Source of the DNA: Macrostomum lignano
Taxonomy: Eukaryota
NCBI GenBank assembly: GCA_002269645.1
Contig: NIVC01002947.1
Coordinates: forward strand, 1 to 64,000
Reading direction: 5' to 3'
DNA length: 64,000 nucleotides
The position numbers and the translations under genes are program-made. The notes beneath the pieces are model-generated. The model saw only the letters and a program-made list of their open reading frames with translations, ran no database searches and was not told the origin of the DNA. Of this stretch, positions 30,058-61,712 are shown in pieces (position 1 is the first letter of the stretch; each line of letters starts with the position of its first letter).

Positions 30058-30150
30058 CACCTGCCTACACTGCCTACAGTGCTTACAGTGCCTACAGTGC
30101 CTACAGTGCCTACAGTGCCTACAGTGCCCACAGTGCCTACAGTGCCTATA
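30058..30150. repeat. 9-bp tandem repeat (CAGTGCCTA)n
   Basis: Directly visible. Confidence 0.9.
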
Positions 30151-30159
30151 TGACTAACT

Positions 30160-31065: not shown

Positions 31066-31754
31066 ACTTTATAGTTAGATGATTTTTATAGGTATAGATA
31101 AGTAGACGCTCACAAGGGGTGTACAGGGGTCCCGACATTCTCATCGTAAAGAAGCTGCGGCCCTCATAAACTGCTAGTTTAGAATTTTTTTACAGAATCG
31201 AACCCCGATGCTCTGTAGGCTAGCCAAGCCTTCTTTGGGTTGAGAGACCATTGCACCCAGGGTCGCGTGACCCCAGCCCCCACCCCTAGCGTCCCAATTT
31301 TCGTTCAAAAACAAATCGAACACGGGGAGCTCAAAAACAGGAAGCTGCACAAGTCCTTCTGGCAGCTGTGTGCCGGATCTCAGGCGCCTCAGCTGCCGCA
31401 CAGGCTACAGAGAGGCCCGAACTGCCGGAAACGCAGTTAAACCCCTCAGCCTCACCCTCCTCCTTCTCCTCCATCTCCTCCATCTCTAGCTCCTCAGCTC
31501 CCCCATTTCTTACCTCGGCCAGAGCGTGAGGAAAGAAATCCGGGGGAGGTTAAGGGGCAGAGGCCGAGGCCTGAGCCGGAGAGCAGAGACGCGCGAAGCT
31601 CTCTCGTTCGCTCGAGACGCGCGGGCAAAAGTGATGGGGGAGGGGGAGAGACGGGGGGGGGGTCGGTCGGAGTCTTCAAACCGTCAGGCCATAGCAGCCG
31701 CTGAGCAGCCGCTCCTGAGCTCACCTGCCCAACGTGAGACCTGAACTACTGGGA

Positions 31755-38951
<7,197 letters not shown>

Positions 38952-40606: not shown

Positions 40607-42916
40607 TCATGACTGGAAATTCTCGTCAATCATGGCCCTGCGCAGGGCATCGGATAGCGAGGCCTGCACCACGCTGAGCCGCTCCGCTGGGGCGCAGTCC
40701 GCCTGCCGCAGCTCCGCCAGCGCGTGCATCAGGTCGAACAGCTGGGCGGAGGTGAACACCGCCTGGTGACGCAGCTCTAAGAGGGGCAGGCAGTCCTGCA
40801 GCAGCGACAGCCAGTACCGCCTGCGGTAAGAGATGGGCCAGTGCTGCTGGTGCCTTCTCAGCTGCTCGCCATTTCCCGTGTGTTCTTACCCTACTTTCCC
40901 CTACTGCCCTCTCACCCCTACTCTCCCTCTCTCCTTCTCACCCCTACTCCCCCTACTATTCCTCTCTCCTCTTTCCTACTCCTTTTACCCCTACTCACCC
41001 TCTTTCCCTTATTTTCCTCTCTGCCCCATTCTCCCCTACTCTCCCTCTCAACCCTACTCTCCATCTCTCCCTCTCACCCCTACTCTTCCTCTCTCCTTCT
41101 CTTCCCTACTCTCCCTCTCCCCCCTACTCTCCCTCTCACCCCTACTCTTCCTCTCTCCCCTACTCTTCCTCTCTCCTTCTCTTCCCTACTCTCCCTCTCC
41201 CCCCTACTCTCCCTCTCACCCCTACTCTCCCTCTCACCCTAGCCTTCTCTACTAACAGGTAGGTCCCTACATCGAGCTGCACAACTGCCTCACCTGGGAA
41301 TCATTCGCGAGCTGAGCAGCTGCGCGGCCACATCGGCCGCTTCGGCCAGCTGTCCGGCGGACACCCGATCGTGGAAGAGCTTGTACTGGCACAGGAAGGC
41401 CATTCGGTTGCTAAGCAGAGCGCTGGTTGCCAGGCAGTCGAGCGCATCAGCTGAAGCGGCCCTGGCCAGGCCGGCCGAGTCGCCGCCAGCTCCCAGCAGG
41501 AATTTATCCGCTATGGCCGCTACTAGACGAGGGTCGCGAGCTCGAATCGCCCAGGTAAGCGCGTTGCCTAGACAACCTTTGTCAAGGGCGCGCCTAGCAA
41601 CGGTTCTGGCCACGGTGTTGGCGGAGTCTAGAAGGCCGCGGGCATGGCAGGCGGCGAAAATCTGCTCCGCTTTGCGCTGCGACTCCGGCGGCACGCGGAC
41701 CAGCAGAGCCTCCTGCGGGGTGGCAGCGGCGGCGTGAGGGCTCGGCTGTGTAATCCTCTGGTTTACAGAGCTGCTTCCATGCTCTATCTATGGCTGCTTC
41801 CATCCTCTATTTATGGCTGCTTCCATCCTCTATTTATGACTGCTTCCATCCTCTATTTATGGCTGCTTCCATGCTCTATCTATGGCTGCTTCCATGCTCT
41901 ATTTATGGCTGCTTCCATGCTCTATTTATGGCTGCTTCCATGCTCTATCTATGGCTGCTTCCATGCTCTATTTACGGCTGCTTCCATGCTCTATCATGGC
42001 TGCTTCCATGCTCTATTTACGGCTGCTTCCATGCTTTATCTATGGCTGCTTCCATGCTCTATTTACGGCTGTTACCATGATCTGCTTAGAGCAGCTTCCA
42101 ATAAGAGTAGAACTTATACAAGAAGATATTTACAAAGACCAGCAGCAGAGCCAGTCCGCTTACCTGATAGTGCCTGCCGTAGTTGGAGCAGTAGTCCAAG
42201 TAGCTCACGGCCAGCTGCCACAGCGCGGCCCGGCCCAGCATGCTGTGCGAGTACTCCAACAGGAAGTGCTCGCGAATGGCCCCGAACCCGCCGCCGCTGC
42301 CACTGTAGCCACCGACCTCGCCGCCCAGGCAGTGGTGCAGCAGGTCGGCCAGGTGCGCCACGAACCACCAGTTGCTGCCGAGGCAGCCGGCCGCTTCGGC
42401 CAGGAACTGCCCGACCTGACCGTCGAACAGCAGGCGGACCAGCACGCCGTCCAGTAGGCCGTCACCGTCGCCGTCCCGTTGACTGGGCCGGTCTCGCTTG
42501 TACAGCGCCTCGGCTTCGGGGGCCTCGCGTCCGAGGCAGTCCAGTGAGCCGGTGGGGTTGGTGAGCAGCAGGCGCGCCAGCAGCAGCTGGTACCAGGAGT
42601 CGCACAGGCCGACAATCTCCGGCCTAGCGAAGGCGTCCTCGTCGCCAGCCAGCAGTTCAACGAGCAGCTCCAGCTGCGGGTGGGCGGCGAACAGGCCGGC
42701 CTCGAGGCGCACGCGGACGTCCTTCTGCCACAGGCAGTGGGCGACATCGAACTTGCGCACTGACTGGCTGTCGCGTACGAAGCTGTACTTTGGCATGTTG
42801 AGCAGCTCCATCGCGTCTTTGAGCTGCTGCTGACGGCCGGCCTGAGAGTGCTGAGACAGCAGGTTGCGGGCGTCCACGGTGCGGCCCTGCGGAGGGGCGG
42901 GTTTGGGATAATCTGA

Positions 42917-42980
<64 letters not shown>

Positions 42981-42987
42981 GTGTCTT

Positions 42988-43034
<47 letters not shown>

Positions 43035-43037
43035 GCC

Positions 43038-43104
<67 letters not shown>

Positions 43105-43811
43105 GTCTGTCAGTGCCCAGCTCGTACCTGCAGCACCAGCAGGTACAGTGAGTCCCAGAACCGCTGGTGCAGCTCGGGCGCATCAGTGGCGTTGGCAGAC
43201 TCCAGCAGCTCGGCAATCCAGCGGTCGGGCTGCGGGCAGTGCAGCCGGGCCCAGTCTACCAGCTCCAGCAGAATTTGAGGGGCGGCGGCGGCGCTCTGAT
43301 AGCGCGGCGCTACCCAGAGGATCTCCACCAGGTGCCACAGTATCTGGCAGGCAGCCAAAAGTTGCGACTGGTTCTCCAGGAAGGCGGCAGCTTCGGGCTC
43401 ATCGGTAGCAGCAGCAGCGGAGTCCATCAGCTCGGAGGCGCAGTCGTGCATGAGGGCGCGGTACTCCTTGCTGCAGCGGAGCAGAGCCTCGCGAGTCTCA
43501 GCGGAGCTGCCAACGGAGGCGTCGCCAAGTCGCTGGCAGGTGAGGAACACCCGGTGCGACTCGGCAGCCAGCCGGCGAAGGGTGTCGCAGTCGTGAAACT
43601 CGGTGGACCAGCGGCATTCAAGCAGGTGTCCGGAGCTGGCAGCAGCGACAGCTGGCCGAGAGCTGGCCGCGGCGGCCGCCTTGAAGACGGTGACGACCGC
43701 GCCTAGGGAGGACCAGGCGGCTCCCAGCTGACAGCCGGCTTCCACTGTCGGCAGCGGCAGCGCCACCGAGCTCTCCGGCTGCTGAGATGAGGCCGCTTCG
43801 CCTTGGAACAT
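40607..43811 (-). CDS. NUP85: Nuclear pore complex protein Nup85, about 679 aa: complement(join(40607..40820,41294..41712,42164..42886,43128..43811))
   Basis: Motifs [29 protein letters not shown]|[32 protein letters not shown]...[46 protein letters not shown]. All introns are GT-AG and the summed length of 2040 nt is in frame. Confidence 0.9.
40905..41250. repeat. CT-rich minisatellite (CCCCTACTCTCCCTCT...) in NUP85 intron 3
   Basis: Directly visible. Confidence 0.88.
41770..42075. repeat. 23-bp repeat ATGGCTGCTTCCATGCTCTATTT in NUP85 intron 2
   Basis: Directly visible. Confidence 0.93.
42917..43110. repeat. (CTGT)n microsatellite in NUP85 intron 1
   Basis: Directly visible. Confidence 0.97.
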
Positions 43812-43859
43812 CACGGCTGGGCTGCGACAGTTGCGAGTGGCAGCTTTAATCTCATGAAC

Positions 43860-44940
43860 CTCACTTGAGATGCTTTGGGAATCTCACTGAGATTCTTTGG
43901 GAATCTCACTGAGAGGCTTTGGGAATCTCTCTGAGATGCTTTGGGAATCTCACTGAGATTCTTTGGGAACCTCACTTGAGATGCTTTGGGAACCTCACTT
44001 GAGATGCTTTGGGAACCTCACTTGAGATGCTTTGGGAACCTCACTTGAGATGCTTTGGGAATCTCACTGAGATGCTTTGGGAATCTCTCTGAGATGCTTT
44101 GGGAATCTCTCTGAGATGCTTTGGGAATCTCTCTGAGATGCTTAGGGAATCTCTCTGAGATGCTTTGGGAATCTCTTTGAGATGCTTAGGGAATCTCTCT
44201 GAGATGCTTTGTGAATCTCTTTGAGATGCTTAGGGAATCTCTCTGAGATGCTTTGTGAATCTCTCTGATGCTTTGGGAATCTCTCTGAGATGCTTTGGGA
44301 ATCTCTCTGAGATGCTTAGGGAATCTCTCTGAGATGCTTTGTGAATCTCTCTGATGCTTTGGGAATCTCTCTGAGATGCTTTGGGAATCTCTCTGAGATG
44401 CTTTGGGAATCTGGGAATCTCTCTGAGATGCTGGAAGGATGATTGGAATCTCTCTGAGATGCTTTGGGAATCTCACTTAGAGGCATTGGGAATCTCACTG
44501 GAAGTAATCTGGAATCCCACTGGAAGGAATCTGGAATTTCACTGGAAGGAATCTGGAATTTCACTGGAAGGAATCTGGAATTTCACTGGAAGGAATCTGG
44601 AATTTCACTGGAAGGAATCTGGAATTTCACTGGAAGGAATCTGGAATCTCACTGGAAGTAATCTGGAATCCCACTGGAAGGAATCTGGAATCCCACTGGA
44701 GGGAATCTGGAATCTCACTGGAAGTAATCTGGAATCCCACTGGAAGGAATCTGGAGTCTCACTGGAAGGAATCTGGAGTCTCACTGGAAGGAATCTGGAG
44801 TCTCACTGGAATGAATCTGGAGTCTCACTGGGAGGAATCTGGAGTCTCACTGAAAGGAATCTGGAGTCTCACTGAAAGGAATCTGGAGTCTCACTGGAAG
44901 GAATCTGGAGTCTCATTGGGAGGAATCTGGAATCCTACTA
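43860..44940. repeat. Compound 22-bp minisatellite between UVSSA and NUP85: GGGAATCTCTCTGAGATGCTTT (43860-44480), then GGAATCTGGAATTTCACTGGAA (44480-44940)
   Basis: Directly visible. Confidence 0.95.
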
Positions 44941-45106
44941 GAAAGCATTGGGAATTAAGCAAACTCTAAACAATATCTAAAAAGTATAAAATTAAAACTA
45001 ACAGAAGCATGATAAGAATAAAAATCAGCAGGATTACAAGACCATGGTATATTTACTGCATATCTACCCCAGCATAAAATATTCCAGTTAGGAAGGCCAG
45101 GCCAGC

Positions 45107-47245
45107 TCAGTTCAGGAACTGGTACTGGAACTGGTCTCCGAATTTCTCCTGCATTTTCCTTCGCCGTCTCGCCTCCTCGTCCTCGGCCGCCCGCCTCAGC
45201 GCGGCCTTGCTGGCCACCCGGGCTGCCAGGCGGCTCCTCGGCGTGTCCACCAGCGCCCGGATGTCCACCAGGCCGCCGGTGCCGTCCGCCGTTGCGCTGT
45301 CGGCAGTCCACTGCGGCTGCTTCTTCCTCTTGACGGCCGCTTTCTTCTTAGGCGACTGAGACTGCGACTGGCTGCCGGACGGCTCTGCAGCGGAAGCAGA
45401 AGTGGCAGCAGCGGCGGTCAGCTGCCCAGCCTCATCCCTGGGCAGGATGCGGCCATGGAACGGGCACTTCAGGCGGTCCATTCGGGCGCAGACGCCGCCG
45501 CCGGGCAGCGGGTGGCGGCAGGCCCAGCGCACCGGCTCCTCGGGCTTCGAGTACACCATGGTGCGCATCGTCAGGATGTGCCGACTGCCGCTGATCTCGA
45601 AGGCTTCGTCGCCGTCCAGCGGCCGGTAGCCGAACGAGTGGCCGCCGTCGTCCATCCTGTAGCCGATGGTGGCCGAGCTGAGCTCCGCGGCCGCGTCCTT
45701 CGCGCCCCAGTGCAGCAGGTCCAGGCCGAACGGCACCGTGGGAACAGCGCTGCTCTTCGTCGACTCTGTCGCCGAAGCCGACGAAGCTGCTGCCATCGTA
45801 GTTGACGCTGAAGTCGAAGAGGCAGCCGGTCTTGAAGCTGCCGACGACGGCTTGCTGGCGCTGGCCGGAGCCTCCTCGGCCTCCGTCTCGAAGCCTTCCT
45901 TTTTTTCGACAGCCTCGAAGTCGGTCGTGGATTCGTCGTCGTCATCCGTCAGGTTGTCGCCATCGACATCGTCGCTGAGGTGCGGCTGTCGGTCTCCGGC
46001 TGGCTGCCGCAGGATCCTCAGACTGGCCGCCTGTCCGAGCAGCCGGTCGGCTCTGGCCAGCAGGTCGGCCAGCTGGGCTCGCAGCTGCTGGTCGCTGGAG
46101 GAGTCGCTGCCGTCCTGCAGGCCGCCGCAGCGATCGGCCAGGGCCAGCCAGCGGGCCAGCCGTGGCCGGAGCTTCTTGCGCAGCTGGCCGGAGCGAGTCG
46201 CCAGGGCTTCGACCAGCTCGGCGTTGTCCGGCGTCTCTCGGACAGTCGGACGGGCCAAGCGAAGTTGCAGCGTCGATGTAGAGGAGGCGGCGGAGGCGGC
46301 GGCGGCGGTGGCCGAGCAGCTGACGATGCCGTGCAGCCGGCGGCGCTCGTCCTCGGTGGCGCCGTCAAAATCGGCGTCGGTGTCGTCTTCGGCGTCGTCG
46401 ATGCTGTCGGCGTCGCCGGTCACACGGCCGGAGGTGAGCGAGTTCACGTCGAATTCCTCCGGCCGGGGCACCAGCAGCTCCAGGCAGTTGGCAACGGTTG
46501 CTAGGCAGGCGTTGAGCTCGGCCTCCTCGTCTTGAAACTGCCGCCGCGCCTCGTCCAGCAGGTCGCGCTTTTTCTCAGCCAGCCGGCGCGCCTCCGCCTG
46601 GCGCTGCTCGGCCGCCGCGGCGAGGCGGGAGCGAACCTGCGACAGGCGCGACTGGGAGGGGGAGAATCTAATCTCACTCTGAGATATCGAATCTCTTTGT
46701 GGCCTGTGAAACATTTGATCTCGATGTGAGAAAGCCGTGGAAATCCGTAGAAATCGAATCTAATCTCTGTTATTAAACATCAAATTTCTCTCTGTCAAAC
46801 ATCTAATCTCTCTGTTAGACATCAAATCTCCTTATTTGTTAGACATTTAATCTCTCCGTGAGAAGCATTTTAATTCGCAATTTCTGATAAAAAATGCATT
46901 CATGAAGATCGGATTCTCTGATAGAGAAGTCAGCTGACTTGGTGAAAAACCGAACCCCCCACAGTCATGTTCAGAAACAGATTCAATCACTAAGCCCATT
47001 GAAGTCACGAAGGGTCAATTGATGCTCACCGCGTGCGCTTGAGAAAGAAATCTGAAAGCGAACAGCAGCTTGGGCTGCTCAGCGCTGAACTGCTCATGCC
47101 AGTCGATGAAGGCTTCCAGGGCGATGTCGCCCAGCTGACGGAACACTGACACCGGCTTGGGTGGCGGCGAGCTCGCGTCATTGTCTGCGGGGTGGGATAG
47201 GATAGATAGATAGATAAATGAAGACGGACAGACAGACAGACAGGC

Positions 47246-47278
<33 letters not shown>

Positions 47279-47301
47279 GGCAGACACTAAGACAGACAGG
47301 C

Positions 47302-47354
<53 letters not shown>

Positions 47355-47370
47355 TACAGGCAGACAGACC

Positions 47371-47406
<36 letters not shown>

Positions 47407-47833
47407 GGCAGACAGACAGGCAGACAGACAGACAGGCAGACAGACAGACAGGCAGACAGGCAGACAGGCAGACAGACAGACACAGGCAGTTAAAAAACCC
47501 ACCAGTGAGCACGGAGGCCACCAGTCTTTCGAACCTGTCCAGCACCAGTTCCCGGAAGCGGCGCGACCTTCTAAACAGCAGGTCGACAATCTGGAAGGCG
47601 GACAGGCGCACCTGAGCATGGTCCTGGGCCAGGCGGTGGCACAGCAGGCTGTGCGCCAGGTCCACCAGCTGCTGGTCGGAGCGGCAGAGCCGCTTCAGCT
47701 CGGCGCTGTCCGCCGGGTCGAGGCTGGGCCGGCCGCTGCGCGTGAGCCGCTCGATGCAGCCGTGCAGGCGGTCCCGGGGGTCGGCGGCGGTGGCTGCGCC
47801 TGGACGACCGCGGCGACCCCGGGAGGCGTCCAT
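45107..47833 (-). CDS. UVSSA: UV-stimulated scaffold protein A, about 676 aa: complement(join(45107..46651,47030..47184,47503..47833)); exon 3 acceptor could alternatively be 46678
   Basis: VHS-like N-terminus ([14 protein letters not shown]...ELKRLCRS...[24 protein letters not shown]), zinc finger [30 protein letters not shown]-terminal [11 protein letters not shown]. Junctions keep frame. Confidence 0.92.
47222..47485. repeat. (GACA)n microsatellite in UVSSA intron 1
   Basis: Directly visible. Confidence 0.97.
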
Positions 47834-47929
47834 GGCGACGGAATGACTGATGGGAGCGACTGGCGCAGCGCGGGATTGTCGCGCTGGAATGCGGCAAACT
47901 CAAGCTTGGATTTGGGATCTTTGGGTTTG

Positions 47930-48480
47930 CGGACCTTTGATTGTGAGGATTCTGGGCACTGGGCTCTTTGAATGTGAGGATTCTGGGCCCTGGGACCTTT
48001 GATTGTGAGGATTCTGGGCACTGGGATATTTGAATGTGAGGATCTGAGAACTGGGATATTTGAATGTGAGGATCTGAGAACTGGGATCTTTGAATGTGAG
48101 GATCTGAGAACTGGGATCTTTGAATGTGAGGATCTGGGCACTGGGACCTTTGATTGTGAGGATCTGGGCACTGGGACCTTTGATTGTGAGGATCTGAGAA
48201 CTGGGATCTTTGATTGTGAGGATCTGAGAACTGGGATCTTTGAATGTGAGGATCTGAGAACTGGGATCTTTGAATGTGAGGATCTGAGGGATCTGACTGG
48301 GAACTGAGAACTGGGATCTTTGAATGTGAGGATCTGGGCACTGGGACTTTGAATGTGAGGATCTGGGCACTGGGATATTTGAATGTGAGGATCTGGGCAC
48401 TGGGGTCTGGGCACTTGATTGTGAGGATCTGGGCACTGGGATAGTTGAATTTGGGGATCTGGGCACTGGGATCGATCTGG
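47930..48480. repeat. 30-bp minisatellite TGAATGTGAGGATCTGAGAACTGGGATCTT in the MTG2-UVSSA spacer
   Basis: Directly visible. Confidence 0.94.
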
Positions 48481-48628
48481 GCACTCGGCGACGTGAGAAT
48501 CCAAGAAATATAAGACAGAAAACAGCTGACAGGTGGGTATCAAACAGAAATGTTTACTTCCTACCGCACTAGCAATAATCTACAGAAGCGGACGCGCACA
48601 GATCAAAAGTCAAATGCCGCTATGACAA

Positions 48629-49522
48629 TCAAGCAAAAGACTTGTAGCAGAAGAATGAGTGCAAATACTCCAGCAGCCGGTCAATATTGTGGCCAGTCTT
48701 GACCGAGATGGTCAGCACAGGGCCAGGCAGACTGTTTGCTTCTTGAAGCAGCAATTTCAGATTGTCCTCCGAGTAGCTGAGGTCGGCCTTGTTGGCAGCG
48801 ATGAGTTTGACAGACCGGGACATGCCGGCGGAGAAGTGGTCCAGCTCGTCGCACAGGGTCTCCACCTGGCCCAGGGGGTCCTGGGCGCCCAGGTCAATCA
48901 CGCAGATCAGGCAGGGGCAGCGGGCGATGTGGCTGCAGGTTGCGGTGGGGATTGGAAAAGTACTTATGCAGCAGCCAAGGATGCCGGAGAATCACGCGGG
49001 CAACTCGTGGGCATTATAAAAATCCTCGAAAATAGCGAGAAAACCTGCGCAAAATTTATAAACTCGAAACTCCACAAACTCGAATCTCCACAAACTCGAA
49101 TCTCCACAAACTCGAATCTGCACAAACTCGAAACTCCACAACTCGAATCTCCACAAACTCTAATCTCCACAAACTCGAAACTCCACAAACTCGAATCTCC
49201 ACAAACTCGAAAATTCACATCGCTAAAAAGTAACTCCCGCCATTACTAAAAACATCACAATTAGGAAGACGTGACATTTCGAGTTTATAAAAGCGACCTG
49301 GCTTACTTGCTAACCAACTGCAAACTGCAGCCTTACCGCAGAAAGTCGTGGCCCAGGCCCTGGTTGTCGTGCGCCCCCTCGATCAGGCCGGGGATGTCCG
49401 CCACGCTGACGTCCAGACTGGGGAACTTCACCACGCCAACGTGAGGCTGCAGAGTGGTGAAGGGCTGGGGTGACACCCGCGGCCGCGCCCTGCTCAGGGC
49501 CCTGAGCAGGGAGGACTTGCCA

Positions 49523-49554
<32 letters not shown>

Positions 49555-50713
49555 CAGCACGCGGAGCCGTAGCGACAGCGGCCTGCACTCGCCTTTGGCT
49601 CCGTACTCGGCCAGCTGCGGCGCTCGATTGCTGTTGCTAAGGAAGAATGCGTTGCCCTTGCCGCCGGCGCCGCCCCTGGCCGCGATGTACAGCTGGGGTT
49701 TGATGGGGTGGCTGCGATGTACAGCTGGGGTTTGAGGGGGTGGCCGCGATGTACAGCTGGGGTTTGAGGGGGTGGCTGCGATGTACAGCTGGGGTTTGAG
49801 GGGTGGCCGCGATGTACAGCTGGGGTTTGAGGGGGTGGCCGCGATGTACAGCTGGGGTTTGAGGGGGTGGCTGCGATGTACAGCTGGGGTTTGAGGGGGT
49901 GGCTGCGATGTACAGCTGGGGTTTGAGGGGGTGGCCGCGATGTACAGCTGGGGTTTGAGGGGGTGGCTGCGATGTACAGCTGGGGTTTGAGGGGGTGGCC
50001 GCGATGTACAGCTGGGGTTTGAGGGGGTGGCTGCGATGTACAGCTGGGGTTTGAGGGGGTGGCTGCGATGTACAGCTGAGGTTTGAGGGGGTGGCTGCGA
50101 TGTACAGCTGGGGTTTGAGGGGGGTGGCTGCGATGTACAGTTTGGGTTTGAGGGGGGTGGCTGCGATAAAAAAGTGCCCCTCAGCCGCAAACCGCAAACA
50201 ACTTACCTGGCCGTCCTCCTGCAGCTCGCACAGCAACTGGCCAGCCTCATCAAAAACCTGCGTGCCAGGCGGCACGTCCAGCATCCGGTGCTCGCCGTTC
50301 CGGCCGTGGCAGTTGGAGCCGCCGCCGCCGCGACCGGCCTCGGCGCGAACCTCCGGCGGGATGGCGCTGAGGTCGCGTACGGACTCGCTGCAGCGCAGCA
50401 CCACGTGGCCGCCGTGGCCTCCGTCGCCGCCGCCGGGCCCGGCCAGGGGGTTGCAGAACAGCCTGTTGAACGACACCATGCCGTCGCCGCCGCGCCCGCC
50501 CGAACACTGCAGCTGGCGCGAGTCGGCGAATCCTCGAACGTCGGCATCGCCGGCCGCCCGTCGCTTTCGGTGCAGCGGGCGAGGCGGCGACGTCGCCGCG
50601 GACGACGACGAAGCGAGGCGTCGACCAGCAAGCGACGACGACGACGGCAGCGCTCTGCCGAGAGCCAACAGCGACTGCGCCGTTCGGAGAAAAGTTGGCT
50701 GCAATATCAGGCC
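48629..50713 (-). CDS. MTG2: Mitochondrial Obg-family GTPase: complement(join(48629..48932,49337..49692,50207..50713)); no in-frame genomic ATG at the 5' end
   Basis: Obg fold ([17 protein letters not shown]...[45 protein letters not shown]), G1 [12 protein letters not shown]2 PFTT, G3 DIPG, G4 [24 protein letters not shown] fits MTG2/GTPBP5 better than GTPBP10. Basic, acid-free N-terminus resembles a presequence. Confidence 0.85.
49060..49212. repeat. 16-bp repeat AAACTCGAATCTCCAC in MTG2 intron 2
   Basis: Directly visible. Confidence 0.88.
49680..50168. repeat. 32-bp minisatellite (about 15 copies) in MTG2 intron 1; the unit contains the 3' splice site and the first bases of the next exon
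   Basis: Sense-strand unit CTCAAACCCCAG|CTGTACATCGC(A/G)GCCACCCC; real junction CCCCAG|CTGTACATCGCGGCCAGG. Confidence 0.95.
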
Positions 50714-50734
50714 CTGATTAGTACTGATGATTTC

Positions 50735-51400
50735 AAAACAAACCGGAAGCAAACAAAGACAAACCGGAAGTCTAAGAAACACAAACCGGAAGCAAAAACA
50801 CAAACAGGAAGAAAACAAAGACTCAAACCAGAAAAAAACACAAACAGGAAGAAAACAAAGACTCAAACCAGAAAAAACACAAACAGGAAGAAAACGAAGA
50901 CTCAAACCAGAAAAAACACAAACAGGAAGAAAACGAAGACTCAAACCAGAAAAAAACACAAACAGGAAGAAAACAAAGACACAAACCGGAAGCAAAAACA
51001 CTAACAGGAAGAAAACGAAGACTCAAACCAGAAAAAAACACAAACAGGAAGAAAACAAAGACACAAACCGGAAGCAAAAACACAAACAGGAAGAAAACAA
51101 AGACAAAAACCGGAAGCAAAAACACAAACAGGAAGAAAACAAAGACAAAAACCGGAAGCAAAAACACTAACAGGAAGAAAACAAAGACTCAAACCAGAAA
51201 AAAACACAAACAGGAAGAAAACAAAGACTCAAACCAGAAAAAAACACAAACAGGAAGAAAACAAAGACACAAACCGGAAGCAAAAACACAAACAGGAAGA
51301 AAACAAAGACACAAACCGGAAGCAAAAACACAAACAAGAAAGTAACAGACACAAATCTGAAGTCAAAAAGGACACAAACTGGAAGTTAAAACAAAGACTA
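50735..51400. repeat. About 40-bp A-rich minisatellite (T-rich on the gene-sense strand) in the TMEM70-MTG2 spacer
   Basis: AAACACAAACAGGAAGAAAACAAAGAC... reiterated. Confidence 0.92.
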
Positions 51401-51536
51401 AAAAATTATCAATTAAAAGCGACTGAAAGAAAGGAAGACAAAAAATTGACTGAAAATCAGACTTGCATTTGTATTTTATAGCTAAGCAATGGAGCAATGC
51501 TAATATTCTATAGCAATAAAGGAGGCGCAGAAATCG

Positions 51537-52124
51537 CTACTTGCTACTGCGGCCAGTAGTCTGTTGAAAAATTTTGGCCACAGAATCGAAGTCCAAGCTG
51601 GAGGCAGCGTCAACAAACAGTTTTGCACCGTTGCTGGGCACGCTTAAATTAGCAAACGGTATGCCAGTCTCTGTCAAGGCAACTTCGTCTGGCCGGAAAT
51701 CGATAAACCGATTGCGCAACAACACAGTCTTGGTCACGGCTCGGTAGGCGGTGCCATCCGTGTTGGCAAACAGCCAGAACACGTAGGAAGATGTGAACAG
51801 GTGCAGCAGCAGTGGGGTGGCCAGGGAGAACAGGCCCAGACCTCCAATGAGCACAGCATCCACCGCTCCGCCCCTGCCAGCCATGATAACAAAGGCCTGG
51901 CCGCACAGCCCAGCACTGCTTGTGGCCAGCGAGAAAGCTTTCACGCCTCGAACCATCGCATTCTTGGGGCCCCGGTAAACTAAACGATAGTTGGAGCCGG
52001 CAAGCTGCTCTTCTGCTTGGCTTGCCTGGCACAGGGACCTCTGGCTAGATTGACAGCTGGGTGGTAAACTCAAAAAGTTTGAATGGGTAGAAATTCTGAT
52101 GATGGCTCTTGATGCAGACAGCAT
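51537..52124 (-). CDS. TMEM70: Transmembrane protein 70 (mitochondrial ATP synthase assembly factor), single exon, 195 aa
   Basis: RLVYRG...VRGVKAFSLATS, FSLATPLLLHLFTSSYV..L, TAYRAVT..LL, F.PDEV match the family pattern. Presequence-like N-terminus MLSASRAIIRIS. Confidence 0.85.
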   Translation of the reverse strand: MLSASRAIIRISTHSNFLSLPPSCQSSQRSLCQASQAEEQLAGSNYRLVYRGPKNAMVRGVKAFSLATSSAGLCGQAFVIMAGRGGAVDAVLIGGLGLFSLATPLLLHLFTSSYVFWLFANTDGTAYRAVTKTVLLRNRFIDFRPDEVALTETGIPFANLSVPSNGAKLFVDAASSLDFDSVAKIFQQTTGRSSK

Positions 52125-53951
52125 TGCAGAAGCAATGAAGCTGAAAGTAGTCAGAAATAAAACTAAGTCGAATGGACAGTGAAATTTTAGACTTTGTGCA
52201 TATTATGCATCCATGATTTTTATACAATCTATAAGGAATAATGTAAAATGATTGAATGAGGTTCGAAACATCAACTGTGGTGATGATGAAGATTTAATAT
52301 GAAATATTACTGCACAAGAAAACTACTTAACCCTCTCGATTTTAAACTGCCAAATAAGTTTTATTCATTTTTTGGCTAAAATTAATTAGTTGATATTCTC
52401 CCTAAATCTACTTATAAATCATTGTTAACTGTCACTACTCAATTTTTTTTTATTTTGCCTTTAAAATTAACAAAACAACAAAAAAGATCTCTTTTATTGA
52501 ATGCAGAGTTTTATTTTCATAGGATTTCATACAGGAAAGATATAATCATTCTAGTCTGATTATCAAGTCCATGGAGAGAACTCAGCTTTATATCTTAAGT
52601 CAAAAGCAAGCATTTGGTATGGAATAAGCAAGTGCTAGCATAGTAATGGATCCAAATATTTGGATTTGAAATCAAAATGCATAAAATGTCTAACTTTTTT
52701 AGACATTTGAATGTTTTGAATTTAAAAATATTTCCAAATATCTGAAAATGTGCTTCTAAATATGAAAAAATTCAAGAAACCAAAAAAATGTAAAAATTAA
52801 AGAATAAAACTTTTGAAAGAAGACAGTACATTAAAAATTAAAATACTAAGTTTTATATTTTATTGTTCATTTTTACAATTGACAGTTTTTGCAATGGCAT
52901 ATATAGTTATAGTTATCAAAAATGTTATTAAACTTTGGGACCTTTTAAGGCATTAAGCCTGAAGTTGAAAAGTTTTTTAGGTAATCATTTTTAAGTGTAA
53001 TCATAACTTAGCTTTTCAAAATGCAAATGCATAGACTATACAATATATATTTATGCATTGCATTATACATGTATTGTACTTTGAAATTAATTATCTGGAT
53101 TCATCATTCATTTATGTGAGAGAGTTTACAAGAACAATTCTTAGCACAAATATAGCCATGAACATAGTACATAATAGAATACAATATAATATAATACATA
53201 ATACAATAATATATATATAGGCCAAAAGGCCTAAAATATGCAGAGGGGCCTAACATAGGCCTAGTAAACAAAGTTACCATTATTTTAAAGTGCTAGGCCT
53301 AAAATTGAGAGTTGCAATTAATAGTGATCACATTTAGGCCCTAAAGGTTCACTGATTCAATAATTGGCTAATTGATGAAGTGGGTTGAGGGCATTCCATC
53401 TTATATACTAAATCTGAAAATGTTTGTAACTTTGTTTATAAGTTTCGCATCTCCTCTTGAACCACTTGGTAGATTTTCGTCAAATTTGTTTCATTCGATG
53501 TGGAATTCTACTGGGCCCATGTGGTCTAATTTTCATTTTGATGTTGTAGTGTGAAGCCTCTGAAATTGGAGAAATACTGTACTTCGCCTATCTAATTAGT
53601 GTATTTTTCTCGCAGTCAGAGTTAAATTTTCAATTTTATATCTATGGTGGTCCGTGAAGTTGACTACGCGGCCGCAGCATCAGCAGCAGCAGCAGCGGCG
53701 GCTCGAGTCTAAATAAAGTCTTTCAATATATAAAGCTAATTATATAGTGTATTTTTCTCGCATTGATTTTATAACCTTGAAGTTCTTTAAGGTGAGTTCA
53801 ACCGGTGAGTTCAACCGTGAGTCTGTTCAACTTCGATTCATTCATATTCGTGCTGGATTGGAGTGATTTGTCTGATCTTCTGTTTGTTTGTTTGTCGGCC
53901 TGAACCGGTTGACCAGTCTCAACAATTTCATGTGAATGTGTCTCTTAGTTT

Positions 53952-54310
53952 TTGATACCTGGGCGATTAATCATTAAGGAATTGCGAAACAATATCTTAC
54001 AATGTCAAATTGCTGCTGGTCAATTCAAAGGCGAAACAGTTTTGTTGCCGCGCGTACCATTGATACCAAGTAATTTGGATCTACCTGTTAAGTTCAGAAG
54101 GCTACAATTTCCTCTACGACCCTGTTTCTGCATGACTATTCATAAAGCACAAGGCCAATCCCTTGACGTAGTTGGAATTGACCTTGCAGGTAGCTGTTTT
54201 GTGCATGGACAGCTCTACACTGCACTTTCCAGAGCAAAAAATGTTTGTAATGTTTGAGTTCGAATGTGCGGCAAAAGAACCAAAAATATCGTTTACCCAG
54301 AAGTTTTTTG
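53952..54310 (+). pseudogene. C-terminal fragment of Helitron RepHel PIF1-like helicase
   Basis: GETVLLPRVPLIPS...FRRLQFPLRPCFCMTIHKAQGQSLDVVGIDL...FVHGQLYTALSRAK, then a stop and the typical TKNIVYPEVF end. The Rep domain and most of the helicase are absent. Confidence 0.9.
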
Positions 54311-54564
54311 AATTGGACGTCTTTATTATCTATTAATAATTTTTTATAATTCAATTTAAAAAAAATATGTTGCTATTTTACTATGAGCCACAATTAAATA
54401 TTGAAAGTGCATGCTGTCACGCAAAACGTCTATGAGAAAATGTGTGTCCTGAAACTGTATTTTTCGCGGAATGCATAAGCTTGAGATGCATTTCTAGCTT
54501 AAGATGAATTTCTAGCTGCAAGTAGTAAATTCCATTAAATTTGTCTTCATCGTTATGTTAAAAG

Positions 54565-55735
54565 ATGGCAAGCAAGCTAAGCAAGTTAACGATTTCTTCT
54601 CTCTCTGTCGGTCCCATGCACGGCGTAGTCTCCGGAATTACTTTGTTAAGAACTGAGGTAAGCTTCCATAATTTGCTATTTTGCTTCATATATATACTTT
54701 TTTTAAAAAATCAATCCACTTAAACAACATCGTTTTTTACTAAACCAGATTAGGGATGGCAAGAAGAACAAATGGTTTTCGTTTTTGATGTCAGATGAGT
54801 CAGGTGAAATCAGAGTGGCAGTTTTTGGCGATGAGTTGCAAGAACACTGGAGCATTTGCGAAAACAGGCAAACAATCTCCATCTGTGAAGGAATGGTAAA
54901 GTGTGCTAATCCAAAATTCAACTGAACAAGCAATATGCATGAAGTTACTCTGTCAATCAATGAGGATAACAAGGACTCTCTCCGCCAGTGTAGCGATGCG
55001 ATAGTTCCCATAAATGGTCCGTTCAAAGCGCTCTCCGAACTACCAAGAATTGGAGTGAATGGGTAAGTCCATCCTCAAAATGTAGAATAAACAGGAAGAT
55101 ATATATACTTCACACATTTTCATTCTTCATATTTTCAGTTTTGTTGATGTTCTCGGTGTCATTGTCAAAGTGGAACAACCCGTTGACGTCAACACGCGTT
55201 CCGGAAAGTTGGTGCAGCTCGCAAAAGTCTGCATCGTAGACAAATCTGGTTTTCAGACTTTTTGCAACTTCTGGGACGCCTCTGCTACCCAGGTACATTT
55301 GTGGAGACCAGGAGACATAGTTGCTATTAGAAAAGCCAAGATTCAAGAGTACGCCGGCTCGCTTTGTCTTGGTTGCTCATCATCAACTATTTCGTATTCG
55401 CCTGTTCATGACACTGCTCAAGATCTGAAAACCTGGTACGAAGAGTCTGAGAGCAGCACCCAATTTCTACCGCTAGCTAATAGCTCAACTATGGACATTA
55501 CTGACACCGCAGCTGACGACGTGCTTGCATTTGAATTCCTAGCATCGATGCAGCCGCATATCGACCGGATGCGTCGAGTTGTTATCCGCTGTGGAGCGCA
55601 ACGGGTACTTATATATACATATGTATATTAACGGGTATGATTTGACTTTTTAATAGATTGTACTTGAAGAACACATTAATACACTTTCCATTTTAGTACG
55701 TCGGCCTGTTGAACATTTGTAACGAATTCCTATGA
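54565..55735 (+). pseudogene. RPA70-like ssDNA-binding gene (OB-folds A and B), 4 exons: join(54565..54657,54749..55062,55139..55604,55697..55735), one in-frame TGA at 54923-54925
   Basis: GVVSGITLLRTE|IRDGKKNKWFSFLMSDESGEIRVAVF aligns ungapped to RPA70 DBD-A as recalled. KCANPKFN and FVDVLGVIV...IVDKSG...NFW...VAIRKAKIQEYAG...SSSTISYSP...AQDLKTWYE fit DBD-B. GT-AG introns keep frame. Confidence 0.82.
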
Positions 55736-56994
55736 AAGATGGAAAGCTTACGGGAAACTCCCTGAAAAATACGGGAATCTGCTACAACCCCAAGTAACCG
55801 AGGATATTTTATGGTTAAATAATTATTTAGGATATGCTGCAAGTAATTTTAGGTTGCTGTTTAAGTTAATTGTTGTCGATTACGTTAAGATTCAATGCTG
55901 CTGAAAATTTCAATTTGCTAGATCAAACTTTTGTTCTCAAACTTTCAAGCAAATTAACTACTACTTAAATTTGTTCCAGAATTTTTAATCGAATAAAACT
56001 AAACTAACCCAACTAACTAAACTATACTAACTAACGAAATTCACCCGCAAAAATACAATTGTAACCTTATGCCACATGCTAAAAGTAATAATTAAAAGCG
56101 AGTCTCTGAAATAAAAAGTGATAAGTTCGCCCGCAATAACTTCAACATGTCCATGGTCGGATGCTTTTCTTACTTGTTCTGTATATCAGCATACTTTTGA
56201 GTACAAAATGGACGTCAGTTTTATTTGATTGTTAATTTAGGCCTTAAAAATCCAATGGAAGATTGCATCTAATCCAAAGAGAACTGTACAGTCTCCCCCC
56301 GAAAGGGGGGGGGGGCAAATTCTCTAGTCCAATATACTAAAGTTGAAAATGCTTGTTTATATAATCTGCATCTCCTTTTTTTAAAGTGTTTGACGTATAG
56401 ACATGGGATTTGCACCATTCGATGCAAAATTCTCCAGCAGTTGTGTATGACTAATAAAAACAGGGTGTCTAACCTTAAGAAATGGGTGAAAATGTACAAA
56501 AACCTGTTTTTTCCTATCTCTCCAATGTATTTTGACCTTGCTCCCTTGAATGATATAGTCTGTGGCAAAAACTGTGTATGTTAAAATTCTGCCAAGTAGC
56601 AACATGTATATTTTTCTATTTGTCTATTTGGGGCTAATATACTGCCTATGTTGAAATTCTACTAAACAGCTACCAGAGGTACATATTGCGCAGCTAAATA
56701 AACAATGAGAATATAGTCCGAAGCATCTAAAGAATGAGTATACAAGTGCACAATCTGACAGACAAGATGCCACGCGTGCTCATGCTGATGAACTGCAAGC
56801 TAATGAGACAGATGTAGAGCACTTGGCTAGAGTGAATGCTGTGCCTAGTTGCACTAAAAAAAGGTAAGCTGCTGAGACCAATGCTGAGCAACAGCCTCGC
56901 CTGAAATACAATAGAGTGCACAGAACTAAGGCACATTAATATTACTGGCCCAGGCGATGCTCGAGAAAGTGTTCCATTTCTGATGCAAGATAGA

Positions 56995-57400
56995 GTTCAG
57001 ATCTCTCCAATCAGGGGTGGTGGAAACTGTTTTTTCTGGGCAGTAGCTTATCAGTTTGCAGGCATGCCATTGCAAATACTCAACCATTGCAAAGTTGGAA
57101 GCTTAATGGCTACTGCTGCATCCAGACTGTTAATGGAACAGGCAGAGATTTTGTAGTCACAAGGCCTGAAAGTTGACGAGATTGTTTATGACACTCGATA
57201 AGATTGCGTTTATGTGCACAATTTTGTCGTACCTCTACTTGACAGAGTATTTGACCACAACTTGGAAATATATCAGCTAGACGAACGTAATGCTAGCAAA
57301 ATGAATCTTCTTCAAGCTTCATTATCAGCCACCAGGCCACCTCTTGCCATTGCTAGGTTGCTCTATAGTATTTCAGTACTGTTATTGTGCCTCATATGTG
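56995..57400 (+). pseudogene. Decayed OTU-like cysteine protease remnant
   Basis: ISPIRGGGNCFFWAVAYQF resembles the OTU motif GDGNCxFRA (D>G and R>W are single-base changes). Downstream sequence is interrupted by stops and frameshifts. Confidence 0.5.
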
Positions 57401-57451
57401 CTCTACTCTATGAAACCATGCCACTTTAACACCACTTTTTTACGAAACCAG

Positions 57452-58440
57452 ATACGAAATGGCACTAAGAACAAGTGGTTTTTGTTTGTGACTTCAGATG
57501 AATCAGGTGAAATCAGAGTGGCAGTTTTTGGCAATGAGTTGCAAGAACACTGGGGCATTTGTGAAAATGGACTTGCTATTTACATCCACAACGGAATGGT
57601 AAAGTGTGCCAACCCAAATTTCAATAGGACAAGCAATCCTTATGAAGTTACTCTGTCAATCACTGAGGACAACAAGGACTCTGTACCAGTGTAGCAATGC
57701 AATAGTTCCCATTGTTTGTCCATTTAAAACACTGTCTAAACTACAGGGAATCGGATTAAATAGGTAAGTTCATGCTGAAAACATTTGAATAAACAAGAGA
57801 ATTTTTTATTTCACATATCCTTCATTTCCATTCCTCACATTAACAGTGTGGTCAATGTTCTCAGTTTTATTGTCAAAGTAAAGCAACCTGTTGACGTCAA
57901 GACGCATTCTAGAAAGTTGGTGCGGCTAGCAAAAGGTCAGCATAGTGGATAAATCTGGCTATCAAACAACTTGCAACTTCTGGGAAGCTTCTGCTTTTGA
58001 AGTACAATCATGGTGAACAGGAGATGTGGTGGCTATTCAAAAAGCTAAGATCTAAGAGTATTCCGGTTTGTTGTGCCTGAGCTGTTCTTCATCAACTATT
58101 TCATATTCACTTATTGATGATATGGCTATGGCTCAGGACCTACACAGCTGGTACGAAGAGCTTGAAAGCAGCACCAAATTTGTACCACTAGCCAACAGCA
58201 CTACAATGGACAGAACTGTTGATACTGCAGCCAATGGCAAACTGGCACTGGAATTCCCCGCATCGATGCAGTTGCATTTTGACTAGATGCATCGCATAGT
58301 TATCCGATATGGAGGAAAACAGGTAATTTTTTGCCAGTATGATTTTACCTATAATTATTCTTACTTCAAAAATGCACAAATGCACTTTTCATTTTAGTAC
58401 ATGGGCCTGCTGAATGTAATGAAGGATTGAAAAGTTTTGA
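57452..58440 (+). pseudogene. Second RPA70-like copy (exons 2-4 only), multiple stops and frameshifts
   Basis: IRNGTKNKWFLFVTSDESGEIRVAVFGNELQEHW...KCANPNFNRTSNPYEVTL and CSSSTISYSL...AQDLHSWYEE. Same intron positions as copy 1. Confidence 0.8.
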
Positions 58441-58559
58441 AACACGTGAGTCTACTGCAACCCAAGCTACTGAGGATTGCTTGCTGAAGATTTGTTTGAG
58501 TTTTTAACTACTGAGTTGTTAACTGAACATGACAAAAGTTTACATAGCTATTGATGCTG

Positions 58560-58690
58560 TTTTGTTTTGTGCATGGTCAACTCTACACAGCCCTTTCCAG
58601 AGCAAAAAATGTTTTTCAAGTTCAAGTTTAGATGTTGGTTGTTGTCTAGTTAAAAAAAACGAAAACATTGTTTACCAGGAGGTCTAAATA
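58560..58690 (+). pseudogene. Second Helitron helicase tail fragment
   Basis: CFVHGQLYTALSRAKNV and a frameshifted NIVYQEV*. Confidence 0.75.
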
Positions 58691-59358
58691 AACTAAAACT
58701 CAAAGCTCAAAAACTGCCTGTCTATTGGCTTCAATGCTCAATTATCTAAATTCATGACTTTCCTTTAAGCTGTGTTCATACATGCTCTTCTTGAAAAAAT
58801 ATGACATTATTTTATTATGATGTGCGATAAAATACTGAAAGTATATATTGTCACGCCAAATTCACTCACTCCTTCTATGGGAAAAGCTTCTCCTTACACT
58901 GTTATTTGCAAGTGCATAATCTTGAGATAGTGAGAATTGCTTGCTTGCTTGCTAACTAAAAAATGGTAGCAAGCTAAGCTTTAGTTAGGCCTAGTACATT
59001 TTGACAACATATTAAAGACAAAATTCTAATAGCAAACAAGTATAAGAAATTTGTCTTTACTTCATTTTTTATAAACATAAAATACCACATTTTACTCATC
59101 AAACAGCATTGACCATTGTTACTCACATCTAGGCCAGCCTCATAGAGTCAGTTAGGCCTAGACCTAGTCAGTCTAGCAAAGGTCTAAAACATTAAACATA
59201 CTAGACAATAGATATATCTTAATTCCCCACAGAACCCCCTTGACATATTACATATATATAGGCTCTGAGGACTGAGTTGCAGATCTAGAATTCAACTTCG
59301 TCTTGACTTCTAAGTTTAACTTAATAAGAAAGGCAAAACATATCAAAATATTAGCTTT

Positions 59359-59531
59359 GGAAGTGGTTATTTTACGGCTGAGCCATAGATATAGCCAGCG
59401 AGGTAAGTAATACAGTAAGTAATACTTACGGCTCAGCCGTAATAATAACAATTTTTGACATTTCTACGGCCAGCCGTAAAAATTAGAATTTGGGCTATAT
59501 CTACGGCTCAGCCGTAAAAATAACCACTTCC
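59359..59531. mobile_element. 173-bp MITE with about 38-bp TIRs and a 9-bp target-site duplication ATTAGCTTT (Mutator-like signature)
   Basis: Arms 59359-59396 (GGAAGTGGTTATTTTACGGCTGAGCCATAGATATAGCC) and 59493-59531 are near-perfect reverse complements. ATTAGCTTT lies at 59350-59358 and 59532-59540. Confidence 0.85.
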
Positions 59532-61712
59532 ATTAGCTTTAGGTCTGCGTCTGCTTTCTATCAAAAGCAATAACAATTTTATTATGAAAAAAGTCAAAAT
59601 TTCCTATCTTCGTACTGAATTTTTCGGCAAAACAAGCCTCCTTAACTTTTTCTAAGAAGCGTAGTTTCCCATCCTTAACTTGAGTTGAGTTTAGTCTTCT
59701 AAGAGTCTGAAAGAGTTGTGACGGGGGACTTGTGGAAAACTTCATTGTTTTACTATCATTTTTACTATCAGTAGACTACTACGTAAGTGTATCATATTTT
59801 GTATGAATTCTGTGTACGAGTACATTCATTGAATCGGCTTTTATATGTCGGCAAGTGATGAATTTTTAACAAATCAATAATTTGCCCAGCGCCCATCGTA
59901 ACTCTCAGCCAATTACAATTCGCTGTATCATCTATCGTTTTATATTAACTGTTCGTTTTTCGTCGCTACTCAAAAACAAATAAAAAACTTGGCCAACTAA
60001 GCAAGCAAAATATATCAATTCAATTGAATATTGGACTGCGCTATACTTGCATTTTTCTTCGGTCTTGTTCGGTCTTGTTCTGCCAAGGACTGCCAGATTA
60101 GATTCGTCACAGAGTCTTCTTCACACGCTGTCTCTTTAAATTGGCGCCTTTCAAAAAGCTAATTGTTGACTCAAAGCCGTGACTAATCTGACACTACGTA
60201 TTAGGCCGTGGAATGATTGCTAAACCCTACACAAAAATTACCGAAGCGAAAACTAAAGTTTTTGTTACTAGCCAGCCTATGAACATATGACCTACACAAT
60301 TAAAAATGCAATATCAAGACGCATGCTTGATAAACTCGAGTATTAAGACTGTATGTTCATTCAGTGATTCTGCGTGCGAGTTAAAGTTCATGAAAATTTC
60401 GTGCCTAAATTTAGTAGCTGTTATTATGCTTTAGACCCCAATGTATGCATATACCGCTCAAACAGCAGAAAACTTAGAATTGCGCAGCATCTACGAATGA
60501 GTTCAGCTCGAAATTCGATCGTCGCGCGTTTTTGTGTAATGTATATACGTTGCACTGAACACTCGTACATTTTTTGTATTATTACAAGTAAAAATATTAC
60601 GCGTCATTTCGCCCAAAAGTAATCAAAAAATCATTCGGCATAATTATTTAAAATCTAGAGGGCAATAGCTTTTCCAGCAGTTCTAAAGTTTAAATTCAAA
60701 TTGAACGTTTCTACGATTCCTATAAGGACGTATGTTTTTTGCATAGGGATGATAGCTCTCAAATTTCAGAAGCCCATATTGATGTTGGTTTCGTGACCTT
60801 TCTAGCCCTCCAAGAAATTTAACAGTATGAAAAATTTTCTACGAGTAGTTGACAAACTCGATGCTTCATATGACAATGTCTTTTGTCCATCCAATTTTTA
60901 TCTCAAGAAAAGCAACTCATTAAAAGTCGATTCTTAAAAGCGCAATTCTCATTCATACGGCAATTCAATGTCGGACAGCTCACTGCTACATTTTAGACAA
61001 ATTAATTTAACATACAGCACAGGTATTAACTGTGTAGTTTGTGTATATTTGAACCAGTTTTAATAAGCACTCCAACAATTCTAACAAAGTATAACTTAAC
61101 TTTTTATCAATTCTCTTTACGAATTTAAAATTAGTGGAACAGAGAACTAAAGTGACAATTTACGTACTAGCAGTAGTATTGCTAATGATAATAAGTATAA
61201 CAAAGTTATAACCTGTAAATACAAACGAATAAGTATGCTTGAATCTAGAGAAAACCACTCTAATTTAACAAACAAGACGAACAGTAGCGATTGGACAGGG
61301 AGCGCGGACACTACAGGCCATGATGCGCTCAAATCTCGAACACCAGAAACAGCAAATTGGCAACTTTGTAAGCTTGCGATTCCTAGCTATTTAAGCAATT
61401 ATGGTGAGTAGATTTCCAGTCACTTCACCTCGGTCTCGAGCTAGCAGATGGGGCGGTCAATGCAGAGAGGGGAACAGAAAAGCAAAAAAGCAACAACAGC
61501 AAAATGTGGAAAGAAAACTAGAAGAGAGCAAAACCAGGGAAGATTGGAAACATTCAACAGAATTAAACAGCGATAAGAAATTTTAAACGAGAAACATCGA
61601 GTGACAATGATAGACCAACAGCCTCAGCAATATTCATCAGAGACCTGACGCTTTCTAATATAAGTTTAACGCTTTTCACTAAAACCATCAAAACTCATCA
61701 TGACTTGTCAGC

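Follow-up and report, generated by a model that had tools for sequence, protein, structure and literature searches.

Among systems in which polycistronic precursors are resolved by spliced leader (SL) trans-splicing, the closest described to the locus reported here are the operons of the flatworm Macrostomum lignano itself, where multiple trans-splice sites mark about 7% of the transcriptional units as precursor mRNAs (Wudarski et al., 2017, PMC5730564). In this species 30% of the genes are trans-spliced and 15% reside in operons, trans-spliced and operonic genes being mostly conserved housekeeping genes, and the trans-splice acceptors follow the motif [T/C]TNCAG (Ustyantsev and Berezikov, 2021, PMC8629364); published operon sizes range from two to nine genes, with two in 75% and three in 18% of the operons (PMC5730564; PMC8629364). 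Repeats contribute substantially to the operon spacers, it is repeat subtraction alone that makes the distances between neighbouring trans-spliced genes bimodal, with the main peak at about 100 bp, and the repeat-adjusted operon cutoff is 1 kb (PMC8629364). A block of four genes, which encode a TMEM70-family protein, MTG2, UVSSA and NUP85 and lie head to tail on the minus strand of contig NIVC01002947.1 (assembly Mlig_3_7, GCA_002269645.1), is, with a probability of roughly 0.8, a true polycistronic SL trans-spliced operon of this kind, unit Mlig004019. The analysed stretch of 64,000 nucleotides, positions 1 to 64,000 of the forward strand of this contig, is called the window in the following.

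With the described M. lignano operons the locus shares the species and the assembly, the naming of its members as g2 to g4 of one unit, acceptors of the [T/C]TNCAG type, repeat-inflated spacers and a content of housekeeping genes; its size of four genes, although less common, falls inside the published range and nothing essential differs; after subtraction of repeats the spacers, at about 200 bp, slightly exceed the mode of roughly 100 bp (PMC5730564; PMC8629364). A four-gene operon, which may or may not be this locus, serves as the example in Figure 2c of PMC8629364. In the public genome the locus already carries the annotation of a single transcriptional unit, and repeat-inflated spacers have already been published for M. 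lignano; the tags Mlig004019, Mlig017907 and Mlig020497 find no mention in the searchable literature or in the supplements of PMC5816591.

Exon models were derived from canonical GT/AG sites, protein domains were assigned with Pfam and tandem arrays with Tandem Repeats Finder (TRF). For MTG2, UVSSA and NUP85 the models give proteins of 383, 689 and 677 amino acids, which are the annotated lengths, and match the respective GenBank entries exactly (Table 1). The first-pass annotation, made from the raw sequence, had named four minus-strand genes, all of which were confirmed by Pfam: besides the PF06979 family of the first gene, these are GTP1_OBG (E=8e-45) and MMR_HSR1 (E=6e-22) in MTG2, UVSSA_N (E=8e-30) and DUF2043 (E=6e-24) in UVSSA, and Nucleopor_Nup85 matches on three exon open reading frames of NUP85 (E=1e-22 to 1e-37). 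MTG2 was confirmed by its homologues as well. The label TMEM70 holds at the level of the Pfam family, which unites TMEM70, TMEM186 and TMEM223, and does not separate TMEM70 proper from the other two; the gene is a single exon with an annotated 5'-partial coding sequence (CDS) of 200 amino acids that begins FIASAM. The OBG GTPase is MTG2, as it combines the OBG fold and a G domain and its best named matches, at 44-48% identity, are to the animal 'mitochondrial ribosome-associated GTPase 2' from molluscs, crustaceans and vertebrates; no annotated flatworm orthologue is among its best 120 matches. Homologue searches with TMEM70 and UVSSA returned M. lignano proteins only, in the case of TMEM70 the protein itself alone.

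Membership in one transcriptional unit is recorded in the public annotation. In the TBONE pipeline, transcriptional units derived from RNA-seq are split into genes by mapped SL-containing reads and T-fill poly(A) reads, and the genes cut from one unit by these signals are designated.g1,.g2 and so on, as for the unit Mlig030697.1 holding genes.g1 and.g2 in Supplementary Fig. 5a of Wudarski et al. (PMC5730564). MTG2, UVSSA and NUP85 carry the GenBank locus tags BOX15_Mlig004019g2, g3 and g4 with the consecutive accessions PAA54233, PAA54232 and PAA54231, all labelled 'partial', and the shared prefix together with the consecutive g-numbers therefore denotes one annotated precursor transcript. The TMEM70-family gene is very probably g1 of Mlig004019, because it is the only gene called upstream of MTG2 on the minus strand before a 9.5-kb gap and because MTG2 is tagged g2 not only in the window, but also on a sister contig (Mlig017907g2). 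No other gene is called between the four, which are thus adjacent and equally oriented. As NUP85 is followed by a convergent phosphodiesterase (PDE) gene, with its PDE domains on the plus strand, the unit ends at NUP85.

The AG sites which the first-pass annotation had quoted upstream of the four genes are all present at the distances given, TTTCTGACTACTTTCAG before the TMEM70 ATG included, but TTGCAG, a second and better acceptor of MTG2, had been missed. The coding sequences of all four genes (4/4) are 5'-partial and without a start codon at the annotated 5' end, so that the transcript model is open in frame from its very first base. For TMEM70, the transcript starts at 52140, directly past the acceptor TTTCAG (AG at 52141), and the CDS at 52139, 1 nt past it; the CDS of MTG2 immediately follows TTGCAG; and UVSSA of the third copy of the locus in the assembly (NIVC01000827.1, Mlig020497g2, 692 amino acids) starts 2 nt past ATTCCAG, at the first in-frame codon. 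The motif [T/C]TNCAG is matched by TTTCAG of TMEM70, TTGCAG of MTG2 and TTCCAG of UVSSA; by our own rough estimate it occurs by chance in a 50-nt window in about 10% of cases, and its presence at three of the four genes is suggestive, not decisive by itself. In the window, the annotation lets UVSSA begin at 47872 and NUP85 at 43805, positions about 10 nt past ATTCCAG and CCCAG respectively, and the NUP85 start skips the ATG at 43811. Compared with the exact end of the paralogous UVSSA, these offsets of about 10 nt suggest a systematic imprecision of boundary calling at multi-copy loci. For NUP85, GTCGCAG and CCCAG are the candidate acceptors; the idea of an SL AUG used at 43805, where the annotated CDS starts, was rejected, as no AG precedes this position.

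The OBG domain of MTG2 begins at residue 59, while the first methionine encoded in the genome is found only at residue 74, upstream of which no in-frame ATG occurs in the open frame that extends 300 nt into the array. With no genomic ATG before the OBG domain, the start codon for a functional protein is not supplied in cis. M. lignano has a single SL of 35 nt, CGGTCTCTTACTGCGAAGACTCAATTTATTGCATG, which ends in TTGCAUG (3' end ...CAATTTATTGCATG), and the terminal ATG of this leader is in frame with MTG2 at either junction, TTGCAG/CCA or AATCAG/GGC. Judged from the sequence, the initiator of MTG2 would be the AUG donated by the SL, and the SL-extended N-terminus, which in its first 50 positions has nine arginine or lysine residues, one histidine and zero acidic residues, reads as a putative mitochondrial presequence. 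A MTG2 contig from Logan (SRR28338163_616428), presumably of a related Macrostomum species, with 78% amino acid identity over 280 aligned residues, keeps the 73-residue extension in frame, with indels of one and three codons, and has no ATG ahead of the conserved methionine, the frame being open up to the first base of the contig. Whether RNA- or DNA-derived, this contig starts 1-2 nt away from where, by homology with M. lignano, the SL junction is expected. Intron 1 is absent from it or spliced out, yet it reads 35 nt into intron 2. No M. lignano contig for the four genes was returned by the Logan search.

In M. lignano, intron 1 of MTG2 holds a 32-bp minisatellite of 15 copies (49677-50167), the unit of which duplicates the 3' splice site of the intron itself and the first 16 nt of exon 2 (CCCCAG/CTGTACATCGCrGCCA), so that the intron end carries 15 tandem potential acceptors; among them the last alone yields the annotated protein of 383 amino acids, in which LYIAARGG fits the conserved OBG motif.

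As far as PMC9851317 reports the work of Cheng et al. (2006, J Biol Chem 281:733), the SL AUG is required as initiator by more than 40 cDNAs of Schistosoma. Like those cDNAs, MTG2 has no start codon of its own and is in frame with the SL AUG; unlike the Schistosoma cases so described, its use of the SL AUG is predicted from the genomic sequence. For TMEM70 and UVSSA the SL AUG would be out of frame.

That the block would consist of plain neighbours, four independent and conventionally capped genes whose AG motifs are fortuitous or belong, as cis-acceptors, to 5' exons missing from the annotation, is highly improbable. Four genes share one strand by chance with a probability of 1/8, CAG motifs are common, and no AG directly precedes the annotated starts of NUP85 and of the UVSSA copy in the window. 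However, the full OBG protein of MTG2 needs an upstream AUG which the genome does not provide, the annotated transcripts of three genes begin at AG acceptors, all four coding sequences are 5'-partial, a transcriptional-unit name is shared and SL reads at the acceptors are already implied by the method of annotation.

Table 1. Genes, intercistronic spacers and candidate SL acceptor sites of the block; positions are those of the window.
Feature	Position	Strand	Details
Gene 1, TMEM70/TMEM186/TMEM223 family	ATG 52124, stop ends 51537; annotated 5'-partial CDS from 52139	-	PF06979, E=3e-15
Gene 2, MTG2, PAA54233.1, Mlig004019g2	50698-50207, 49692-49337, 48932-48629	-	Pfam; exact match, 383 amino acids
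Gene 3, UVSSA, PAA54232.1, Mlig004019g3	47872-47503, 47184-47030, 46651-45107; ATG 47833	-	Pfam; 689 amino acids
Gene 4, NUP85, PAA54231.1, Mlig004019g4	43811-43128, 42886-42164, 41712-41294, 40820-40607	-	Pfam; exact match, 677 amino acids
Spacer 1	50699..51536, 838 bp; array 50738-51398, 661 bp	-	TRF; T/G-rich units of 42/82 bp
Spacer 2	47884..48628, 745 bp (795 bp to ATG); array 47931-48473, 543 bp	-	TRF; 30-bp unit
Spacer 3	43817..45106, 1290 bp; arrays 43866-44934, 1069 bp	-	TRF; two abutting 22-bp arrays
TTTCTGACTACTTTCAG	52157-52141	-	candidate SL acceptor of gene 1; fits [T/C]TNCAG; 16 nt before ATG 52124
AATCAG	50719-50714	-	candidate acceptor of MTG2; UniProt A0A1I8IKX2 starts after it
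TTGCAG	50704-50699	-	second, better candidate acceptor of MTG2; GenBank CDS begins 0 nt after it, at 50698
ATTCCAG	47890-47884	-	candidate acceptor of UVSSA; end of spacer 2
CCCATCAG	47854-47847	-	second candidate acceptor of UVSSA; chimeric UniProt model splices into it
GTCGCAG	43828-43822	-	candidate acceptor of NUP85
CCCAG	43821-43817	-	candidate acceptor of NUP85

Spacer lengths were measured from the stop codon to the nearest candidate acceptor. Gaps of about 820, 800 and 1300 bp filled with about 665, 550 and 1080 bp of tandem repeat, and 150-250 bp of unique DNA in each, had been estimated at first, and the measured lengths (Table 1) bear this out. The unique DNA amounts to 177 bp in spacer 1 (138 bp past the stop codon and 39 bp before the acceptor), 202 bp in spacer 2 (155 bp past the stop codon and 47 bp ending in ATTCCAG) and 221 bp in spacer 3 (172 bp past the stop codon and 49 bp with the acceptors), so that, adjusted for repeats, all three are below the 1-kb operon cutoff. 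A common layout of 138-172 bp of unique sequence, array, 39-49 bp of unique sequence and acceptor is found in 3/3 spacers. The idea of minisatellite-inflated spacers matches what Ustyantsev and Berezikov (2021) reported for M. lignano. What did not stand is the implied special nature of the spacer repeats: all introns of MTG2, UVSSA and NUP85 likewise hold a tandem array, tandem repeats make up about 35% of 40607-52124 and 13% of the M. lignano genome, and one of the two 22-bp array families of spacer 3 (44489-44928) recurs at 36742-37401 inside the PDE gene of the opposite strand and is, hence, a dispersed repeat. Both arrays of this family have the same plus-strand orientation, and one of the two transcripts contains the family in sense, the other in antisense. 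As further side observations, the first intron of UVSSA holds a tetranucleotide microsatellite, (AGAC)65 on the plus strand (47222-47482), and the first intron of NUP85 a (TGTC)47, also on the plus strand (42918-43104), which is its reverse complement. No SL-like sequence was detected in the window and no Rfam family was matched, so that the spacers hold no SL RNA gene or other non-coding RNA.

Three copies of the locus with about 99% identity are present in the assembly, namely the window, a copy on NIVC01002789.1, on which the single-exon TMEM70-like protein is found as on NIVC01002947.1, and a third copy on NIVC01000827.1:1-16997. Near-identical copies in this number are expected from the duplicated large chromosome of line DV1. 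Gene order is identical in 3/3 copies, and the array copy numbers vary between them; the MTG2-UVSSA spacer, for instance, measures about 1070 bp in the third copy versus 745-795 bp in the window. With regard to spacer constraint, the window and the copy on NIVC01002789.1 are 99% identical, so that the differences in array copy number alone are informative. Frameshifting indels affect MTG2 and NUP85 in the third copy and MTG2 in the copy on NIVC01002789.1, and could be assembly errors or decay.

In the spacers as in the introns, the arrays look like neutral filler that would be tolerated. That the minisatellite spacers are non-neutral, with a role in intercistronic processing or, through variable copy number, as modulators or promoters for the cistrons downstream, is very unlikely. 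The narrower proposal of the arrays as processing or regulatory elements, in which the 660-nt, U/G-rich and nearly AG-free array before MTG2 would resemble the Ur element of Caenorhabditis elegans and copy number could tune expression, has the slimmest chance of all. It can draw on the layout common to 3/3 spacers and on spacer 1 being strikingly U/G-rich on the sense strand. However, no sequence relationship links the three arrays, the introns all contain an array as well, the PDE gene holds one of the families in antisense to its transcription, copy number differs between near-identical copies, and the literature treats such arrays as neutral insertions (PMC8629364).

The spacers also bear on the possibility of a hybrid or pseudo-operon, in which each gene is trans-spliced, but transcribed from a weak promoter of its own within the array or the adjoining 39-49 bp, while the single unit would be an artefact of read-through and multi-mapping. 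As 30% of the genes are trans-spliced and 15% operonic, trans-splicing alone is no proof of an operon; 1000 multi-mappings were allowed when the transcriptional units were assembled with STAR (PMC5730564), at least one of the spacer array families is dispersed, and raw gaps of 745-1290 bp could accommodate a compact promoter. Nevertheless, this explanation is unlikely, considering that the unique DNA of 177-221 bp per spacer is mostly 3' untranslated region of the upstream gene and that array copy number varies between otherwise 99% identical copies, which fits neutral DNA. Moreover, repeat-rich spacers tend to split transcriptional units (PMC8629364), but did not split Mlig004019, and the adjacency, orientation and adjusted spacing of its genes agree with what has been published for operons of the species.

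Gene models from an independent annotation that fuse neighbouring cistrons, spliced over the spacers into the acceptor regions named above, point more weakly in the same direction as the naming of the unit; in parasitic flatworms chimeric models have been taken to indicate polycistronic pre-mRNA (PMC12582326). UniProt A0A1I8IKX2 (1065 amino acids) runs from AATCAG through MTG2, exits five codons ahead of the stop codon, at a GT, and enters UVSSA at CCCATCAG, while UniProt A0A1I8F3V2 fuses exon 3 of UVSSA with NUP85 across spacer 3 and includes an antisense stretch of the PDE gene. Such models mislead clustering, by which MTG2 and UVSSA come to lie in one 90% protein cluster.

Several points weigh against the interpretation of the locus as an operon. 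Ab initio prediction may have produced the UniProt chimeras as artefacts, antisense PDE sequence being part of one of them, and multi-mapped reads over dispersed spacer repeats could bridge separate transcripts artificially. SL addition and transcription of the spacers are deduced from the annotation, and so is the position of TMEM70 as g1, a presumed member with an inferred name. Promoters may reside inside the arrays or in the unique stretches of 39-49 bp. The annotated 5' ends of UVSSA (47872) and NUP85 (43805) do not follow an AG, their boundaries being imprecise or otherwise derived. Finally, the SL AUG would be out of frame for TMEM70 and UVSSA; an out-of-frame SL AUG is also common in flatworms.

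The SL trans-spliced polycistronic unit initially proposed for this flatworm is supported by the shared Mlig004019 naming, by coding sequences that start at an AG acceptor for TMEM70 and MTG2 in the window and for UVSSA in a paralogous copy, and by the need of MTG2 for the ATG of the SL. In the operon so conceived, RNA polymerase II would start somewhere upstream of 52141 and produce one precursor that comprises the TMEM70-family gene, MTG2, UVSSA and NUP85 and is read through the minisatellite-filled spacers. Cleavage and polyadenylation of each upstream mRNA would fall in the unique sequence of 140-170 nt past its stop codon, and the single 35-nt SL would be added to each mRNA at an AG acceptor 0-50 nt before the coding start. 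In MTG2 the SL AUG would serve as initiator and add a basic, acid-free, presequence-like N-terminus.

For the operons of C. elegans, Blumenthal and Gleason in 2003 reportedly described a coupling between 3' end formation of the upstream gene and the addition of the SL to the downstream one. The locus shares with the SL2 operons of the nematode a polycistronic pre-mRNA, short intercistronic distances once repeats are disregarded and an enrichment of housekeeping and mitochondrial genes, but M. lignano has a single SL ending in AUG, no dedicated SL2 and no defined Ur element, and the raw spacers measure 0.75-1.3 kb versus about 100 bp in C. elegans. It works like that family, but is not a member of the SL2 type. 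With the operons of parasitic flatworms it has in common that same-strand clusters are resolved by SL trans-splicing and that predictors fuse the cistrons; the threshold of <=300 bp applied there is exceeded here solely through the arrays (PMC12582326).

In Lottia gigantea MTG2 has unrelated genes as neighbours. The human orthologues of the four genes are located on different chromosomes.

Around the gene block, the window holds further repeats. From the contig end to the first gene, 25.5 kb (1-25511) are occupied by a satellite with the 22-bp unit AAAAATCATAGAAGCGTCATGT in about 1150 copies of 98% identity. Three plus-strand genes with repeat-filled introns follow at 25686-38951, encoding a fibrinogen C-domain protein, a PDZ-LIM protein and the PDE1-like phosphodiesterase that converges on NUP85, with a microsatellite (AGTT)146 at 35125-35712. 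Upstream of TMEM70 extends a 9.5-kb AT-rich stretch (52200-61700) of 32-39% GC versus 55-62% GC in the gene block, a sharp contrast; the stretch has an internal repeat of about 0.9 kb with 76% identity, and no feature in it marks a promoter at 52200-53300. Helitron-like remnants are found at 53952-54257 (C-terminus of a UvrD/PIF1-type helicase) and 55170-55631 (RPA OB-fold); an EMP24 gene lies beyond 61713.

While biologically nothing new, the locus validates the recognition of a flatworm operon and of its trans-splice acceptors from raw sequence. It shows why raw intergenic distance fails for operon detection in repeat-rich genomes and why predictors fuse cistrons. If the arrays were functional after all, the gene dosage of the operon would be tunable by repeat length. 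MTG2 provides a clean example of a start codon, and hence of a presumed mitochondrial presequence, that needs the spliced leader; if this is true, mitochondrial targeting of MTG2 would depend wholly on the AUG donated by the SL.

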